The position numbers and the translations under genes were made by a program. A DNA stretch of 64,000 nt. Origin: Podarcis filfolensis. Lineage: Eukaryota. Of the stretch, positions 8,491-57,841 are shown one piece after another. The stretch lies in assembly GCA_964270895.1 (NCBI GenBank), contig OZ185437.1; one strand, written 5' to 3'. How positions within the stretch are numbered: position 1 is the stretch's first letter; the number at the start of each line of letters is the position of its first letter. Below the pieces are notes generated by a model, which made no database searches, was not told the DNA's origin, and worked only from the letters and a program-made list of their open reading frames with translations.

Positions 8491-11079
8491 TAAACAGCTA
8501 GCTCCGCCTCTATTCTAAAGGAGACTGCCTCAGTCTGAGGAATCATAGAATCATTGATTCATAGAGTTGGAAGAGACCACAAGGGCCATCGAGTCCAACC
8601 CCCTGCCAAGCAGGAAACACCATCAGAGCACTCCTGACATATGGTTGTCAAGCCTCTGCTTAAAGACCTCCAAAGAAGGAGACTCCACCACACTCCTTGG
8701 CAGCAAATTCCACTGTCGAACAGCTCTTACTGTCAGGAAGTTCTTCCTAATGTTTAGGTGGAATCTTCTTTCTTGTAGTTTGGATCCATTGCTCCGTGTC
8801 CGCTTCTCTGGAGCAGCAGAAAACAACCTTTCTCCCTCCTCTATGTGACATCCTTTTATATATTTGAACATGGCTATCATATCACCCCTTAACCTCCTCT
8901 TCTCCAGGCTAAACATGCCCAGCTCCCTTAGCCGTTCCTCATAAGGCATCGTTTCCAGGCCTTTGACCAATTTGTTTGCCCTCCTCTGGACACGTTCCAG
9001 TTTGTCAGTGTCCTTCTTGAACTGTGGTGCCCAGAACTGGACACAGTACTCCAGGTGAGGTCTGACCAGAGCAGAATACAGTGGCACTATTACTTCCCTT
9101 GATCTAGATGCTATACTCCTATTGATGCAGCCCAGAATTGCATTGGCTTTTTTAGCTGCCGCGTCACACTGTTGGCTCATGTCAAGTTTGTGGTCAACCA
9201 AGACTCCTAGATCCTTTTCACATGTACTGCTCTCAAGCCAGGTGTCACCCATCTTGTATTTGTGCCTCTCATTTTTTTTGCCCAAGTGCAATACTTTACA
9301 TTTCTCCCTGTTAAAATTCATCTTGTTTGTTTTGGCCCAGTTCTCTAATCTGTTAAGGTCGTTTTGAAGTGTGATCCTGTCCTCTGGGGTGTTAGCCACC
9401 CCTCCCAGTTTGGTGTCATCTGAAAATTTGATCAGGATGCCCTTGAGTCCATCATCCAAGTCATTGATAAAGATGTTGAATAAGACTGGGCCCAAGACAG
9501 AACCCTGTGGCACCCCACTAGTCACTCTTCTCCAGGATGAAGAGGAACCATTGATGAGCACCCTTTGGGTTCGGTCAGTCAGCCAGTTACAAATCCACTG
9601 AGTGGTAGCATAGTCAAGACCGCATTTTACCAGCTTCTTTACAAGAATATCATGGGGCACCTTGTCAAATGCCTTGCTGAAATCAAGGTAGGCTATATCC
9701 ACTGCGTTCCCTTCATCTACCAGGGTTGTAATTCTGTCAAAAAACGAGATCAGGTTAGTCTGACATGACTTATTTTTCAGAAATCCATGCTGACTATTGG
9801 TGATCACAGCATTCCTTTCTAGGTGCTCACAGACTGTTTGCTTAATGATCTGCTCCAGAATCTTCCCTGGTATTGATGTCAGACTGACTGGGCGGTAATT
9901 ATTTGGGTCCTCTCTTTCCCCCTTTTTGAAAATAGGGACAACATTTGCCCTCCTCCAGTCTGCCGGGACTTCGCCTGTTCTCCAGGAATTCTCAAAGATG
10001 ACTGCCAGTGGTTCTGAGATCACATCTGCCAGTTCTTTTAATACTCTTGGATGCAGTTCATCTGGCCCTGGAGACTTGAATACATCTAAGCTAGCCAAGT
10101 ATTCTTGTACTATCTCCTTAGTTTTTCTGGGCTGTGTTTCCTCTGTTGAATCATTTGCTCCAAATTCTTCAGGTCGGGCATTGTTTTCTTTATCGGAGAA
10201 GAGTGAGGCAAAGAAGGCATTGAGGAGTTCAGCCCTTTCTGTGTCCCCTGTTTGCATTTCACCATCTTCTCCTCTGAGTGACCCCACTGTTTCTTTGTTC
10301 TTCCTTTTGCTACGAACATACCCATAAAAACCTTTTTTGTTGCTTTTAACCTCTCTAGCAAGCCTGAGTTCATTCTGTGCTTTAGCTTTTTTGACTTTGT
10401 GTCTACATGTGCTGGCTATTTGTTTGAATTCCTCTTTGGTGGTTTCCCCCCTTTTCCATTTTTTGTACGCATCCTTTTTTAATCTTAACTCAGTTAAAAG
10501 TTCTTTAGATAGCCACCCTGGCTTCTTTAGGCACCTTCCATGTTTCCGTCTCACTGGTATTGCCTGAAGTTGTGCTTTTACTATCTCCCTCTTAACAAAC
10601 TCCCAGCCATCATGAACTCCCTTTCCTTTTAGTATTACTGTCCATGGGATCTCACCCAGCACTTCCCTAAGTTTTATGAAGTCGGCTTTCTTAAAGTCAA
10701 GAAATTGAGTCCTAGTATGCTTGGCTGCTCCTTTCCGCTGTATAGTAAACTTCAGAAGAGCATGATCACTCGCGCCTAATGATCCTTCCACTTCTACCCC
10801 ACTAACCCAGGTCATCAACATTGGTTAGGACCAGATCTAAAATGGCTGTTCCTCTTGTTGCTTCTCCCACTTTCTGGACAATGAAGTTGTCTGCAAGGCC
10901 AGTAAGGAATCTGTTTGACCTTATGCTCTTGGCTGAGTTTGACATCCAACAAATATCTGGGTAATTGAAGTCCCTCATTACTACTATCTCCCTTCCTTTT
11001 GCATGCTTGGCCATCTGTTCCAGGAAGGCATCATCTATGTCCTCCGTTTGGCTTGGGGATCTATAGTAAACTCCCACAA

Positions 11080-11456
11080 TGTCCGTGGGAGTCAATTACG
11101 TCCAGGGGTCCGGCACACTTCCCTGCGCCTCCTCTGACCCTTCCGAAGACCTTTGACTCAGCAGAGCGTAAAACACAGCGGATGTAGAAGCTTGAAACGT
11201 TCTGTCGTGTGGTGGCAATAACTCAGGCTGACACGCAGCTCTCCTTATCTTAAAGTCTTTATTCCCGTACAGATCAACACATCGTAAATCTTCCCGGTGA
11301 GACGCAACTCATGTCGACTCTCTCTCACACTGCGTGCGTCTTTCTCTCTCTCTCTCGGAGATACTGGCCACTCCCAGTGTTCTATCCCCGCCCTCAGAAT
11401 GTGAGGCGTCATCACTCAGAACTCTTAACCCTGTAAGTTCAAAGCCTCTATTAACA
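11080..11456 (-). repeat. 3' LTR (377 bp)
   Basis: Identical to 14226-14602 except at 11357 and 11441-11442; minus-strand AATAAA at 11258-11263; preceded on the minus strand by the PPT. Confidence 0.96.
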
Positions 11457-13971
11457 CCCCCTCTCGAATCACGTTCTGAGGGGACTTCTGAGTGTTCAAC
11501 ACCTTCCCCATTGCCTTCCGCCCCTTCCTGGCATCGTTGTTAGGCACCTGTTGAACCTCACAAACCTCAGGTTCGCACTGTGCGAAACCAACCCACGCAT
11601 TTGTGACCTGAAACCTCTCAGGTGGAATTCCCTTTGTTGCCCTTGAAGACCGCCTGGGCACAAACTGGGATTCTTCTCCTGACCCACTGGGGCCAGCATG
11701 TGTGTCTTCCTCATCAGAAGACTCCCCCTCTGACTTGACACGTCTGTGAGCTTTCTCCATTATGCGCACAGGAGATGAGGGCTCACTCTTGGACACTCTT
11801 TTCACAACCTGTGGAGACGCCTCCCCCTGGTCCTGATCCTGATCATCGACCAGATCACCATTACCTGGCTCTCCCTCCTGCTCAGATTCGGATTCAGACA
11901 GACAATCTGAGACAGTGTCATGGCTGACTTTGAGCCTTGACCTATTTCCCTGCTGCTCTTTGAACTCAGCATGCTTGCTGACCAGAAGCTTGGTCTGATC
12001 ACCTTCTGGGTATGCAAACCTCCACCCTTTTGTCGCGGGTTCATACCCACAGAAGATCATTTCCTGGTACCTTGGACCACCTTCTTGCTGCAAACACTTT
12101 GGTACAGGCACCATGGCCCTGCAACCAAACGAACGGAAGAAATGCACAAGCGGCTTCTGTCCGTTGAGCAAGAAATATGGGGTGTCACCTACCACTGCAT
12201 TGTAGCACCTGTTCATCGTGAAATTGGCCGTCTTTACCGCCTCCCCCCAAAAACTGTGAGGCAAACCAGAGTCATCCAGTAGAATCTCGGATGCTCGAAC
12301 CAGCGCTTTACTCTTAAGCTCTGCCACGCCACTCTCTTGAGGCGAAGTCACCTTGTGACGTATCCCCCTCTGGCGAAAGAAACTCTTTAGAGCAGACCCA
12401 GTGACCTCAGAACCACGGTCAAACTGGAAACCTTGCACCTTGGTGGAGAACCTCAGTTCCACCTCCGCAACCCAATCTTTGATCAGTTGCGCTGCTTCCT
12501 CCTTAGCTTTCAGCGTGAAAGCCCATGCGTTCCTAGTATAATCATCTGTCAGCACCATCAGCCACTTGGCCTTGCCCAGACTTGGCTGTGGCATACCTAT
12601 AAGGTCTGCATGCACAAGCTCAAAAGGCCTTGTGGTCACTCTCTCCACTCTGGGATGGCTAAATCCCTTGTTTCTGGCTTTCCTGCAAGCCTTGCAATTC
12701 AAAGGTTTACCACATTCTTTTACCTTGCAACCTTTGGTGCACTCTGATAACATCTGGACGTCCTCACAGGACCCATGTGACATCCTCTTGTGCCACACGC
12801 AAGCACACGACACATGAGTGTGCCCCCCTCCCTCTAGAGGTGATTCCAGAACAAAGAGGTTGTTCTGATTTTTCTCAACACGTACCAGTTGCTCTCCACC
12901 TCTGGAAATGGTACAGATATTGTTTTCAAAACTCACAGAATATCCTTCCTGTAAAAGGCATGGTACAGATAGCAGGCTATGTTTTAACTCAGGGAGAACA
13001 TAAACCTTCAATTCAGCCTGTAAAAAAGGGACAAACATATTAGAAATATGGGTTACACGGCCCTGTGAACCTGTAGCAAATCTAACTGTTTTCTCAGTGG
13101 AAACAGCCTTGCAGTTCCACATTTGTCCATCAGGTGGCGCTGATACCAAATGGGCATTCGCAGCTGAGTCAACAACCCAACGTAGGACTCTCCCCGCTCT
13201 GGAGCTGTCCTTCTTTGTTGCCTTAGCAACTGCCTTCCTGCTGCCCCCGACCTTGGAGCTGCAGGTGTCGTTGCTGTCCAAAACCGCCAGAGAAGCAGTC
13301 AGCTGATAAACTTTCTCACGCCTGCTCCCTATGCAGGCCCAGTTGCCATGGAAACCCGGCTGGTTCCCATGGGAAACGACCTTGGGACCTTCCTGCCCTT
13401 TGTCTCGCTGTGGACAGCTTCGGCGCAGGTGCTCCGGAGAACCGCAAGCAAAACATCTCCGAGTGGAAAACTTTGCAACTTTGCCTTTGGTCTTTTCTGC
13501 CCCCCCAACCTTTCCAGCAGCCCTCCTCCTTGAGGCTTTTCTGCCGTTGGGAAAATGGCTTTTGGCTTCTGCTGTGGTTGCTCTGCAAACCCCTTCCAGC
13601 TCCTGCCAAACAGCCTGGGCACTCTCAAGACCCTTGGAATGGCCTTTCTGGCCTGCACCCCCAAACTCTGGTGCAAAACCTCCAGAGGAACAGCTTGCCA
13701 CTGCTTTCCTCTTTCCAGCTTTCAGCAGCTTCCCAGCACACGGCTGCTCATCTCTCTGGCGTGTCAAAGCATCGCAGCAGCTTTCAGACACGGCTTCAGC
13801 CCACTTTGGGCTTCCAGGGCGTCTCACAGCCCCTCCTGGACGTCCCTCAGGCTGGCGTCTGGCCCCCTCTGATGTGGCTCCCACTCTTCTGAGTGCCTGC
13901 CAACCTTCCCAGGGCTTCTTCCCGTCTGCCTCTTCAAAAGGGACTGTACGCGATTCCTGGCTGTCTGCCAT
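11425..13971 (-). CDS. Single gag-remnant/protease/integrase polyprotein ORF (848 aa from ATG at 13971)
   Basis: ATG in strong Kozak context (GAGATGG); the ORF-track start at 14052 is a GTG. CCHC knuckle CFACGSPEHLRRSC (13414-13455); protease WVVDSAANAH (Asp 13168-13170); HHCC region WHKRMSH...CKAC; integrase HADL / FDRG / GVAE; stop TAA at 11425-11427 inside the 3' LTR. Confidence 0.88.
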   Translation of the reverse strand: MADSQESRTVPFEEADGKKPWEGWQALRRVGATSEGARRQPEGRPGGAVRRPGSPKWAEAVSESCCDALTRQRDEQPCAGKLLKAGKRKAVASCSSGGFAPEFGGAGQKGHSKGLESAQAVWQELEGVCRATTAEAKSHFPNGRKASRRRAAGKVGGAEKTKGKVAKFSTRRCFACGSPEHLRRSCPQRDKGQEGPKVVSHGNQPGFHGNWACIGSRREKVYQLTASLAVLDSNDTCSSKVGGSRKAVAKATKKDSSRAGRVLRWVVDSAANAHLVSAPPDGQMWNCKAVSTEKTVRFATGSQGRVTHISNMFVPFLQAELKVYVLPELKHSLLSVPCLLQEGYSVSFENNICTISRGGEQLVRVEKNQNNLFVLESPLEGGGHTHVSCACVWHKRMSHGSCEDVQMLSECTKGCKVKECGKPLNCKACRKARNKGFSHPRVERVTTRPFELVHADLIGMPQPSLGKAKWLMVLTDDYTRNAWAFTLKAKEEAAQLIKDWVAEVELRFSTKVQGFQFDRGSEVTGSALKSFFRQRGIRHKVTSPQESGVAELKSKALVRASEILLDDSGLPHSFWGEAVKTANFTMNRCYNAVVGDTPYFLLNGQKPLVHFFRSFGCRAMVPVPKCLQQEGGPRYQEMIFCGYEPATKGWRFAYPEGDQTKLLVSKHAEFKEQQGNRSRLKVSHDTVSDCLSESESEQEGEPGNGDLVDDQDQDQGEASPQVVKRVSKSEPSSPVRIMEKAHRRVKSEGESSDEEDTHAGPSGSGEESQFVPRRSSRATKGIPPERFQVTNAWVGFAQCEPEVCEVQQVPNNDARKGRKAMGKVLNTQKSPQNVIREGVLIEALNLQG
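11457..11465 (-). promoter_or_regulatory. Polypurine tract
   Basis: GAGAGGGGG immediately precedes the TGTTAATAG start of the 3' LTR on the minus strand. Confidence 0.88.
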
Positions 13972-14210
13972 CTCTCCCCGGGGGCCCAGCTTACTTACAG
14001 GTACCTCCCGGTCCGGCAGATCAGATCCTCCCAGCGAACTCCTGGCTGGCACCAGCTACCCCTTAGCTGGCCTCTGGCTGCTCCTCAGCCGATTCTGCCT
14101 GCAGCTTTCACTTCCCAGCAAGCTCCCTTCGCTTCAGCTGGCACCAGCTTCTCCTTACTGGCCTTTGGCTGCAGCCCCCTCACACGTACGAACGTTGCTT
14201 ATCTTTATTG

Positions 14211-14225
14211 CTGACACCCATAACC
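14211..14225 (-). promoter_or_regulatory. Primer binding site, copia half-tRNAiMet type
   Basis: GGTTATGGGTGTCAG directly follows the 5' LTR. The first 9 nt are complementary to CCCAUAACC in the anticodon arm of initiator tRNA-Met (copia-type PBS GGTTATGGGCCCAG). Confidence 0.85.
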
Positions 14226-14602
14226 TGTCCGTGGGAGTCAATTACGTCCAGGGGTCCGGCACACTTCCCTGCGCCTCCTCTGACCCTTCCGAAGACCTTT
14301 GACTCAGCAGAGCGTAAAACACAGCGGATGTAGAAGCTTGAAACGTTCTGTCGTGTGGTGGCAATAACTCAGGCTGACACGCAGCTCTCCTTATCTTAAA
14401 GTCTTTATTCCCGTACAGATCAACACATCGTAAATCTTCCCGGTGAGACGCAACTCATGTCGACTCTCTCTCACACTGCGTGCGTCTTTCTCTCTCTCTC
14501 TCAGAGATACTGGCCACTCCCAGTGTTCTATCCCCGCCCTCAGAATGTGAGGCGTCATCACTCAGAACTCTTAACCCTGTAAGTTCTGAGCCTCTATTAA
14601 CA
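14226..14602 (-). repeat. 5' LTR (377 bp)
   Basis: Direct repeat of 11080-11456 with 3 substitutions (14503, 14587-14588); followed on the minus strand by the PBS; CpG-rich, with GGGCGGGG and TGAGTCA motifs. Confidence 0.96.
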
Positions 14603-16469
14603 CACAATGAGGTCACTGTTATTCTTCTCTCCCTTAATTTTGACCCAAATGCTCTCACTTTGGCTTTGAGGTTCTAAATCTTGGATCTCTTCACAGGTAT
14701 ACACATCCCTGACATATAACGCCACTCCTCCTCCTTTCTTGTCTGGTCTGTTTCTCTGAAATAGATTGTATCCCTCCATTATTACATTCCAATCGTGGGA
14801 CTTATCCCACCAGGTTTCAGTGATGCTTATTATGTCATATTTAGTTTGCTGTACCAAGAGCTCAAGCTCATCTTGTTTATTTCCCATGTTTTGCGCATTA
14901 GTGTACAGACATTGAAGTCCATTAATCATTCCCCCGTGACTCTTATTTAAGGATTTTTTCCTCCCACCACTAGGTCTGCGTGCTGTTTGCTCCATTTGGC
15001 CTATGATATTTGGATTATCATCTTCATCAATTGATAGACTCCTACCTTCAGGAGCACTGTCTCCCTCCCCCACATTAGTCAGTTTAAAGCCCTCCTGATG
15101 AGGTTTCTGAGATTTTTGGCAAAAACATTCCTCCCAACCGTTGTGAGGTGCAGCCCATCGCTTGCCAGAAGTCCATCTTCAAGAAACTGCAGTCCGTGAT
15201 CTAAGAATCCAAACCGTTCCTGTTTACACCATTTGCGAAGCCAGGAGCTTCATAGATTGCCTAATTTAACTCATGTGTTGAGTCTGCTTCATTTCCCTAC
15301 TTTCCCATTCACTATTGGGAAATAATAATAATAAAAAGGCTATTAATGTTTATGTTAGATAGAAGTGGGTGAAATTTGTAAGCATACTAGGCCCTCCAGA
15401 GCAGATAAAGCCTGCCAAATTAAATATGTCAGGGACCTTTTTTTCTGGACACTTCTAAAATGTTATCTTTTTAAAATGTTGCTTAATTGCATGAAATTTC
15501 CCAGCGTGGTCAACTTCTGAGGGATGAGGATTGTTGAAGTTCTTCATACTTGCTGCAGAAGTTTTTCTGCAAAAGGCAGACTCTGAAGTTTTGGACTGAG
15601 TAAAATAGGAATACTTCCCTCCCCCACCCTTGGTTTTTTGTGGGTCATCGGAATGAAAACTACATACCAAGAAAGGTGAGCCTGCCTGAGAAACCTGCCA
15701 AATTTCAGATGCATAGGTCCAAGGGCTTACAAACTTGATCTGCTCAAAACCTCACGAAGTTTACTGAGTAACTTAGGGCCAATCCAAACTGATCTAAACC
15801 GACCTTTTCTGTGAAGTAGGAGAACTGCTTACACTTACTTCCTTGTGCTCTTTGGCTCATGTAACTGGTTTCACAATTCCTTGGTTCCTGGTTACTGTAT
15901 ATAATTCAAGCATAACTACTAGGTATCTGCATTACACATAAAACATCAATTCCCCTCCCTTCCTAACAAAGAAATTCCCTGAGGAAGGAAATCAACCTTC
16001 ACTGCAAAGTGAGATGTTTGTCAAGCAAGAGAGTGTTCCTGGGTAACAAATTCATTCAGTAGCAAAACATATGTCCTTGCTTAAATACAAGCTAAATTAG
16101 TCCATACTGCGCTAACTGAAACACCTGCAGGACTGGCATGAAAGGAGCTCTGACAAACTAATGCCTCTTCAGAGCTGAAAATAACTTCTCCAAAGAACTG
16201 CCAGATGTCTTACACTTACAAGGAATTCTTCACTTTGAAGAAACTCACCTCTGCAGAGGTTAATACATGCCATTTATTTCAAGACTTTGCAGGTAATCTC
16301 CATACGCATATAGAGCTCCATTGCTTCCCCATCCCAGATGTTGTACAGTATATTGATATCTGATGGTTAGTGTATGGAGGTAAATAGGGAAGGTAAAGGG
16401 TCACTTCAGCAGTGACAAGCCTCCTCCCCACTTCAGGAGTGGGAAGCTGGGCACTTAGGAGTTGCAAGA

Positions 16470-56019: not shown

Positions 56020-56994
56020 TAGTATCTAAATGCAGAGTCCTGTTAAAATCACCCTAGTAGTTTTGATTTCCAAGTAGCTACATCCAGCAAGCATGTTAGG
56101 TTTCACAGCAGCACTTTACAGTTTGCAGTAATCAATTATATTGAAGCACAAGTAGACAGTGAAAAGAAAACCCCAGTGGCCAGGGATACCAGGTCATGTG
56201 GTCCTCCTCCTTGACTTCTGATTGACAGGTTAGCAAACTGACACAGGGAAAGGAATGAGTATTATGCATTTCCAGTTACAAGGGAATTGCGAAAGATAAT
56301 CCTGAAGGCAGAGTGATGGAGAGTGGAGACAAGGAGAATTCTGCTGCAGATATTGCTGTGGCTCCTCTTCCTAATATCCAGGTCAAGCGAAGCCCTGATT
56401 AACTGCTGGTTTGAGCTTATCCTCCTATGGTCCGACCTACCCCTCTTAATCAGTGCATAGATGAATAGACAATTCACATTAAGATCCCATGGGTTATTTT
56501 AAAATTCTCATATAAGTTTAGCCAATCTCTCATGATGTGCTATGTGCGGTTTGGTACTAGAGAACAAATGCCAGCTCTGTAACAGGGATCTAATTCAGAC
56601 ACCGAGCAAGTTCTCAACCAAAAGGCTGCTGAACTGAGCAACACTTACAATCCATCCAATCAACTCTATGAGCCACAGGATGCCACTATTTTTATTTGTG
56701 AAATTCTTATGGCCCTTTCATAAAGGGCCTTCTCATACAAATCGTAGTGACTATATATTTATTTAAGTCCCACTACATATGTGTTTATGCAATTAGCACC
56801 TTCACATAATCCCTGCTGGTTTAGGAATCCAACAGCAGATTCTTGTATAAATGATCGTGCAGGAACCACAGGCGTATGAAGTGAGCCATATAGGACCAAT
56901 AGACAACAAACTGACAAAATACTAGCTGCTATGCAGCACTTTGGGGGAAGGGGTCTGCTTAATGAATTTAAAGTATCTTTAGAGCCAAACCTAC

Positions 56995-57117
56995 CTATAA
57001 AACCAGGTGCACAGAAACAACGATAACCATCAAATCCATCTTCACAGAGACTGAAAGCGCCACAAGGTCGTGACAAGCAGCCACCAATAGGTGTTTCACA
57101 CAGCTTACCAGTAAAAC
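56995..57117 (-). CDS. EYS: EYS internal coding exon A (123 nt, phase 1-1, EGF-like domain)
   Basis: Minus strand: polypyrimidine tract + caacag|GTTTTACT...TTTATAG|gtaggt. Translates (G)FTGKLCETPIGGCLSRPCGAFSLCEDGFDGYRCFCAPGFIG with EGF cysteine spacing and joins in frame to the exon at 53697. Gene identity comes from the downstream exons. Confidence 0.88.
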   Translation of the reverse strand, partial: VLLVSCVKHLLVAACHDLVALSVSVKMDLMVIVVSVHLVL

Positions 57118-57152
57118 CTGTTGAACAGAGAAATAAAGTGAATAAGCAAAGA

Positions 57153-57281
57153 NNNNNNNNNNNNNNNNNNNNNNNNNNNNNNNNNNNNNNNNNNNNNNNN
57201 NNNNNNNNNNNNNNNNNNNNNNNNNNNNNNNNNNNNNNNNNNNNNNNNNNNNNNNNNNNNNNNNNNNNNNNNNNNNNNNNN
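57153..57281. other. Assembly gap (129 N)
   Basis: Run of N bases starting 35 nt upstream (minus strand) of the first base of exon A. Confidence 0.99.
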
Positions 57282-57841
57282 TAAATAAAAAAACCTACCA
57301 ACATTATTTCTCGAAGTTTTTAGTTGCAATGCTTTAACAGCATTTCAAAGTTGGTACTCAAGAAAAATAAATGTCAAAGTAATACCCATCATTTTTATGC
57401 CCCCCTCTCAATATTAGTGACTAATGTTGCCATTTTCTACATGTCTAATTAGAAGCAAACCCCTCTGAGTTCAATGAGGGTTACTTCCAGGTAAGTGGGA
57501 TGGCAGCAGAAGGATTCTTGACATCTTCATTTTTTGTTTGATATAAAAACATGTATTATGGTGCTTGATGACTTTTTTTAAAATTTACTAGAAATCAATT
57601 GTTAGAACAGTAGCTTGTTCAAATGGACCGAATAAGCTCCGCAATTTAAATGAAGAATCTTTGAAGAACAAGGGACTGCAGAGAGGGAACCAGTGTCTTC
57701 TCTAGATCCCGAAGCGATGTGACAAGTTAGCACAGCCTTATAAAAGATCTGAAATGTACACTTCCAACAGTGCAGTTCTGTATGTGTCTACTCAGAAGTA
57801 AGCCCTACCCAGTTTTATGGTACTTATTCACAGGTAAGTGA

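Follow-up and report, generated by a model that had tools for sequence, protein, structure and literature searches.

Can a long terminal repeat (LTR) retrotransposon that no longer encodes reverse transcriptase (RT) or RNase H persist as a lineage, with the remainder of its reading frame kept under selection? This question is raised by a 64,000-nucleotide stretch of the genome of the lizard Podarcis filfolensis (GenBank assembly GCA_964270895.1, contig OZ185437.1), hereafter called the window, in which a Ty1/copia element occupies positions 11,080 to 14,602. The element has a single open reading frame (ORF) for a zinc knuckle, a protease (PR) and an integrase (IN), but it has neither RT nor RNase H. 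Non-autonomous LTR elements are usually seen as non-coding, like terminal-repeat retrotransposons in miniature (TRIM) and large retrotransposon derivatives (LARD), or as coding for gag only (terminal repeats with gag, TR-GAG), and most work on them concerns plants. A first-pass annotation of the window had suggested that the element may belong to a non-autonomous family with a maintained frame. Our analysis indicates that this was probably right, though on other grounds than the one then put forward, and adds that each of the two deletions recurs in a protein of another Podarcis species. We favour, with a probability of about 0.6, a non-autonomous lizard Ty1/copia lineage which carries two internal deletions, borrows Gag and RT/RNase H in trans, and has kept its frame under partly relaxed selection.

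Results

Coding content of the element

Pfam domains occur in the ORF in the order zf-CCHC, Pol_BBD (protease), gag_pre-integrs, rve and SH3_retrovirus and are followed by a remnant of the RT entry region, which is the Ty1/copia order (the zf-CCHC score of 20.9 bits comes from a scan of the N-terminal piece alone). No Pfam match to RVT_2, RNase H or Retrotran_gag_2 was found in the ORF, and full-length copia polyproteins matched once by tblastn, without a break and within one frame, between 13497 and 11482, with no remnant of RT or RNase H elsewhere in the 64 kb. These searches confirm the open 848-codon knuckle-protease-integrase frame without RT/RNase H that had been described at first reading, and they also support the domain order and the reduced gag described there. 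Within the PR-IN part, the ORF frame contains no stop codon versus 11-30 in the other five frames. The CCHC residues, the protease Asp, and the HHCC and DDE residues of the integrase are all retained, and the protease active site reads D-S-A rather than D-S-G (D268 and S269 kept, G270 replaced by Ala). In an AlphaFold model the protease and integrase have a predicted local distance difference test (pLDDT) score of 80-96, scores are low for residues 1-170, and disorder is predicted for residues 192-260 and 675-810. Counted from an upstream GTG, the ORF comprises 875 codons (11425-14052, minus strand).

Residues 25-112 gave no Pfam gag match, and no homology to this region was found in the other frames. 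A compensated frameshift behind the scrambled N-terminal part was ruled out by the absence of gag or RT homology from the remaining frames and the rest of the window, and a domesticated host gene by the location of the ORF between near-identical LTRs with a target site duplication (TSD).

Two internal deletions and their recurrence in other Podarcis proteins

A word search with the whole ORF returned best matches of at most 28% identity, and relatives were sought by an exhaustive HMMER search of 1.84 billion representatives. The autonomous protein P0008 (ENA, 1065 aa) is 39-46% identical to the window ORF from the CCHC region to the RT entry, and the autonomous P0009/P0164 cluster (Logan and Podarcis lilfordi, 773-1386 aa) is about 41% identical from the CCHC region through the integrase. 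Closer than these is P0011 of P. muralis (XP_077785850.1, LOC144327940; 315 aa), with 54-59% identity over residues 565-829. A further word search, with the N-terminal 235 residues of the ORF, found P0172, a hypothetical protein of 257 aa from P. lilfordi. The apparent divergence of the ORF is largely owed to the small number of lizard transposon proteins in databases. No relative was found in viral contigs scanned with the ORF, in metagenome contigs scanned with the alignment of the window ORF and P0011, or in metagenome contigs searched for the exact pattern of LTR end plus primer binding site (PBS).

The two deletions were mapped against the nearest autonomous relatives P0008 and P0164, both of which have full gag and RVT_2. 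At the 3' side, homology extends through the IN-RT linker and the RT-entry motif to residue 830 (position 11482), and the deletion took RT, RNase H and the original stop codon, about 1.4 kb as judged from P0164. At the 5' side, the C-terminal half of gag lacks about 95 residues before the CCHC knuckle when compared with P0008, P0164 and P0010, and homology to autonomous gag covers residues 1-24 and a single gag helix, the one around A-V-W-Q-E-L. What had first been described as a helix remnant and an RT-entry-like stretch thus turned out to be true homology to autonomous relatives. Given the copia gene order, any single 3' internal deletion sparing the polypurine tract (PPT) leaves PR-IN behind automatically. 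The architecture therefore needs no special explanation, whereas its later conservation does.

Each junction was found in one further protein of another species, the RT junction in P. muralis P0011 and the gag junction in P. lilfordi P0172. The RT entry of autonomous elements reads K/R-W-x-x-A-M-E/Q-K-E-L, whereas the RT-less window ORF and P0011 have K-G-R-(R)-K-A-M/L-G-K, so that the W and the E of P0008/P0164 are replaced by G in both. P0011 departs from the RT-entry motif within a few residues and ends at a stop 33 codons later, with no RT; its tail is encoded by purine-rich Arg/Gly codons followed by C-Y, which would fit a PPT and then a TGTTA LTR start like those of the window element. 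P0172 has the same gag C-terminal deletion and bridge as the window ORF, is about 88% identical to it over window residues 113-170, and has a Pfam gag match that ends early (profile positions 2-78 of 172). Since P0172 keeps a recognisable N-terminal half of gag, the scrambled state of residues 25-112 is peculiar to the lineage of the window copy.

Phylogeny and selective constraint

In a PR-IN tree the window ORF is nested among copia polyproteins as sister to P0008, on a branch 1.7 times longer (0.87 vs 0.51). When the tree is built from the C-terminal domain of the integrase, P0011 groups with the window ORF (support 0.97), and the autonomous P0008 stands beside this clade; after the split of its two members, the branch of the window ORF measures 0.23 and that of P0011 0.69. 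The two agree at 27 of the 32 columns that are conserved in seven autonomous integrases, versus 34 of 78 variable columns (Fisher p=1e-4). As agreement is biased to conserved columns, the substitutions since the split of window ORF and P0011 have avoided functionally conserved sites. The same test with just two autonomous sequences and with the linker was uninformative (p=0.8). Indels are in frame throughout, at least five between the window ORF and P0011 and five between the window ORF and P0172, and at a neutral nucleotide divergence of 10% an 848-codon frame would stay open with a probability of about 3e-5, counting substitutions alone. Selection on the frame, as first proposed, is thus supported by the conserved-site bias and the in-frame indels relative to other proteins, but not by the openness of a single copy, to which we now turn.

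Age of the insertion and openness of a single copy

The LTRs differ at 3 of 377 sites, namely G/A at 11357 (a CpG site) and the adjacent pair AA/TG at 11441-11442, and bear out the recent insertion that had been claimed. Squamate substitution rates are near 1-2e-9 per site per year, and the insertion would then be of the order of 1-5 million years old by K/2µ. Observed/expected ratios of CpG are 0.855 for the LTRs, 0.40 for the interior and 0.25 for the whole window, so the description of CpGs as undecayed is correct for the LTRs but fits the interior only in part. An LTR divergence of 0.5-0.8% corresponds to 7-10 substitutions in the ORF since insertion, and about 4% of possible substitutions create a stop. 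The ORF would accordingly still be open by chance with a probability of 0.64-0.78, and the earlier argument that a protein so divergent and still open is a sign of selection does not hold for a single young copy.

Element structure and genomic surroundings

Paired LTRs with TG..CA ends, a 5-bp TSD, a PBS at the 5' LTR and a PPT at the 3' LTR were found, as in Ty1/copia elements (Table 1), and the LTR difference count, TSD, PBS and PPT agree in every structural detail with the first-pass annotation. The PBS is presumably complementary to the internal (anticodon-arm) part of the initiator tRNA-Met, as in Drosophila copia; no tRNA gene for comparison lies within the 64-kb window. A PBS matching an internal region of tRNA-iMet is documented for LTR retrotransposons of Candida albicans (PMC4139406).

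The leader between the PBS and the start codon contains a direct repeat of 37 nt, whose units are 89% identical and 92 nt apart. A role as a packaging or dimerisation signal is conceivable, as is a mere duplication. No tandem repeats were found in or near the element. Across the gag-side part and the leader there are also two long antisense ORFs, 13331-14302 (plus strand, 323 aa) and 13410-13892 (plus strand, 160 aa). They reflect the GC-rich, stop-poor composition of this region and illustrate how little an open frame says about coding there.

The copia element is nested, in the same (minus) orientation, in an older non-LTR retrotransposon, a long interspersed nuclear element (LINE). Removal of the insertion in silico gives no continuous LINE ORF but pieces of 733 aa and 282 aa in different frames. 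Since no single ORF is restored and the CpG observed/expected ratio there is about 0.25, the host LINE was already broken or older. Elsewhere in the window, an ORF of 181 aa at 56759-57304 (minus strand) has a sub-threshold EGF-like match; its length is partly an artefact, since it crosses a run of 129 N at 57153-57281.

Table 1. Features of the copia element and of the LINE around it (positions in the window; element sense is the minus strand)
Feature	Position	Strand	Remarks
TSD CACAA	11075-11079 (left), 14603-14607 (right)	.	Identical 5-mer on both flanks
3' LTR (element sense)	11080-11456	-	377 bp, TG..CA ends; pairs with 14226-14602
PPT GAGAGGGGG (element sense)	11457-11465	-	Nine purines, adjoins 3' LTR
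Interval with RT/RNase H deletion junction	11466-11481	-	Homology ends at 11482; PPT 16 nt away
ORF of 848 codons plus stop	11425-13971	-	ATG at 13971; stop at 11425-11427, about 30 nt inside 3' LTR
RT N-terminal entry-region remnant, residues 791-830	11482-11601	-	Aligns with P0008/P0164 just before their RVT_2
IN-RT linker, acidic and serine-rich, residues 675-790	11602-11949	-	Islands conserved with P0011; pLDDT <50, predicted disordered
Integrase C-terminal SH3-like domain	11950-12162	-	Pfam PF25597, E=2.9e-13; 56% identical to P0011
Integrase catalytic core	12337-12633	-	Pfam rve, E=1.6e-11; D456-D518-E551 kept
Integrase N-terminal zinc-binding HHCC region	12676-12810	-	H394, H399, C426, C429 kept; weak gag_pre-integrs match
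Aspartic protease (Pol_BBD)	12940-13179	-	Pfam 15.1 bits, under cut-off; confident beta fold in model
CCHC zinc knuckle (nucleocapsid-like)	13408-13458	-	Pfam zf-CCHC; C173, C176, H181, C186 kept
Gag helix remnant and bridge over deletion of gag C-terminal half	13462-13635	-	Identity to P. lilfordi P0172 about 88%
Strongly diverged low-complexity N-terminal gag region	13636-13899	-	In-frame insertions; low model confidence
Conserved N-terminal 24 gag residues including start codon	13900-13971	-	46% identity to P0008, 63% to P0172
5' untranslated leader with 37-nt direct repeat	13972-14209	-	Repeat units 14045-14081 and 14137-14172
PBS GGTTATGGGTGTCAGC (element sense)	14210-14225	-	Adjoins 5' LTR
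5' LTR (element sense)	14226-14602	-	377 bp, TG..CA ends
Host LINE endonuclease piece (Exo_endo_phos)	14600-15073	-	Upstream of insertion
Host LINE RVT_1 ORF	8626-10821	-	732 aa; downstream of insertion

Discussion

A lineage that would have lost capsid and RT before its copies diverged

The interpretation that we favour involves two losses. The first deletion would have removed the C-terminal half of the capsid-like gag domain, and the second everything between a point about 12 codons into RT and a point about 16 nt short of the PPT, and both would predate the divergence of the window copy, P0011 and P0172. The lineage would have kept all its cis signals (LTRs, PBS, PPT and leader) together with a frame for the gag remnant, the CCHC knuckle, the protease and the integrase. 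Because no capsid, RT or RNase H is encoded, packaging and reverse transcription would be carried out by autonomous copia elements of the same genome. If the deletions are older than the split of the copies, as we infer, purifying selection would have acted on the frame, and on the C-terminal domain of the integrase at least, while the lineage was RT-less, with the constraint partly relaxed in that state. Why the frame would be kept is a matter of speculation. The fusion protein might help its own RNA or cDNA in cis, by analogy with the I-delta-1 form of the mouse intracisternal A-particle (IAP) discussed below, or it might supply integrase; a possible alternative is that RNA which is translated is protected from decay.

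Several points weigh against this interpretation. Only two relatives were found, one for each end of the ORF and both as annotated proteins, with no relative carrying both deletions, and the shared descent of the deletions is read from protein alignments. Neither a further LTR copy nor a second copy of the element occurs in the 64-kb window. Of the 55 columns with at least 90% conservation across 72 copia PR-IN sequences, the window ORF is off consensus at 13, whereas those 72 proteins depart at a median of 1 and at no more than 8 (4 in P0008, 5 in P0010 and 7 in P0009). Among the departures are D-S-A for D-S-G in the protease and, in the integrase, five altered residues in the motif that surrounds the catalytic Glu (E551); together with the long PR-IN branch, the departures may mean that the enzymes are inactive. 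On the gag side, 519 nt of the frame are weak coding evidence, because the stretch is GC-rich and the other frames are nearly stop-free as well (0-6 stops, with 0-3 in the neighbouring frames). Finally, an unsampled autonomous relative inside the clade of window ORF and P0011 would weaken the dating of the RT loss.

The five changes near the catalytic Glu form a cluster at 12310-12340 (residues 544-555), in the helix around this residue and beside a 3-residue deletion. This cluster could reflect either decay or altered recognition of DNA ends.

Alternative explanations

Rather than a lineage, the window copy might be a single defective product of an autonomous copia, from which RT/RNase H and part of gag were lost by template switching in the reverse transcription that gave rise to this copy or to its immediate parent, and open only because it is young. 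The considerable chance that no new stop has arisen since insertion (0.64-0.78), the ease with which one PPT-sparing 3' deletion leaves PR-IN behind in an element of PR-IN-RT-RNase H order, and the lack of a second copy within the window all speak for such an origin. We nevertheless consider it unlikely, given that both junctions recur in diverged Podarcis proteins, that the RT-entry W and E are lost in the same way in the window ORF and P0011, and that the 13 departures and the long branch point to a long evolution away from autonomy. RT-less copies might instead arise recurrently, when spliced subgenomic RNA of an autonomous element is packaged and reverse-transcribed, in which case one junction would turn up in several species with no self-propagating RT-less lineage behind it, and the open frame would reflect selection in an autonomous parent. 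Spliced subgenomic RNAs are known from Drosophila copia and from barley BARE, and the junctions of the window ORF and P0011 lie almost at one and the same codon. However, the shared gag deletion would need a second intron, and a parent with such a gag would not be autonomous; the length from junction to LTR differs (8 codons in the window ORF vs 14 in P0011); the degenerate residues common to both upstream of the junction fit descent better; and no autonomous member of the window-P0011 clade is found among the 1.84 billion representatives. Such an origin therefore seems to us very unlikely.

Equally hard to credit is a true non-autonomous lineage whose own protein has no function and whose frame is refreshed by repeated recombination, through template switches, with an autonomous partner that is packaged alongside it and is itself under selection. 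LTR elements packaged together often recombine while they are reverse-transcribed (review PMC6894440), but the PR-IN of the window ORF deviates at conserved sites more than any other of the 73 sequences and shares only 39-44% identity with its nearest autonomous relatives, which is unlike recent refreshment unless an unsampled partner deviates just as much. All three of these explanations are made less likely by the gag junction and the degenerate RT-entry residues that are shared, and by the deviant PR-IN.

A more far-reaching version of a maintained lineage, which we regard as rather doubtful, would make the element a long-lived vertebrate copia 'half-parasite', whose own knuckle, protease and integrase have been selected after the loss of capsid and RT/RNase H. 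The fusion protein would then bind its own RNA in cis and enter the particles of the partner via the conserved N-terminal and pre-knuckle gag segments, and the cDNA would be integrated by an integrase tuned to its own LTR ends, with the changes clustered around the catalytic Glu representing adaptation and not decay.

Implications

If the non-autonomous lineage with a maintained frame proves true, it would become testable which proteins must act in cis and which can be borrowed, whether translation itself protects or routes RNA, and whether integrase and LTR ends co-evolve apart from RT. Such a lineage would, moreover, form a natural counterpart of the mouse IAP I-delta-1, the truncated fusion-protein form behind most new IAP insertions.

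Elements of this kind are easily mis-annotated as genes. P0011 and P0172 are annotated as ordinary 'uncharacterized' or 'hypothetical' host proteins, yet they are fragments of this truncated copia family, and are probably transposon sequence mis-annotated as genes.

Comparison with known systems

With no RVT_2 or RNase H and no complete Retrotran_gag_2, the window element is a deletion derivative rather than an autonomous Ty1/copia member. TR-GAG was ruled out, because the capsid part of gag is lost whereas protease and integrase are kept, and TRIM and LARD were ruled out by the 848-codon ORF with recognisable domains. To claim unusual novelty for the element is an overstatement, as partly coding non-autonomous LTR elements are documented in the mouse IAP I-delta-1, in Tos17 and BARE-2, and in sugar-beet families.

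Copia elements have been recently active in squamates (PMC4657000). Autonomous squamate copia, such as P0008, the Podarcis P0164 family, Copia-6 of Anolis carolinensis in Repbase and the insertion in the corn-snake OCA2 gene, belong to the same superfamily and share its domain order, with 39-44% identity to the window ORF over CCHC-PR-IN. Unlike the window element, they have full Retrotran_gag_2 and RVT_2 with RNase H. Tos17 of rice (PMC3977881) resembles the window element in having a copia pol frame and obtaining Gag from a partner, and so does BARE-2 of barley, with its pol frame and partner Gag (as cited in PMC13570524). Both of these, however, keep RT/RNase H, whereas in the window element RT/RNase H is gone besides the capsid half of gag. 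Non-autonomous families of sugar beet keep GAG/PROT or further POL-associated domains and have been placed on a continuum of TRIM, LARD, TR-GAG and defective elements (PMC13570524). Their POL remnants are described as partly decayed and patchy among copies, in contrast to the full frame with intact catalytic residues, in a vertebrate host, described here.

The best documented precedent for a kept fusion frame, by analogy, is IAP I-delta-1, in which an internal deletion of gag and pol creates one gag-pol fusion ORF, with gag and pol needed in trans (PMC6466679). The fusion protein of IAP I-delta-1 has been reported to aid retrotransposition in cis (PMC6466679). The likeness lies in the in-frame fusion ORF produced by internal deletion of parts of gag and pol, and is one of analogy, not of descent: IAP I-delta-1 is a betaretrovirus-like endogenous retrovirus with another gene order and keeps other parts of pol, whereas the window element is a lizard Ty1/copia element without RT/RNase H but with PR-IN. 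The kind of element represented by the window copy is thus already known from IAP I-delta-1, from Tos17 and BARE-2, and from plant families with POL remnants.

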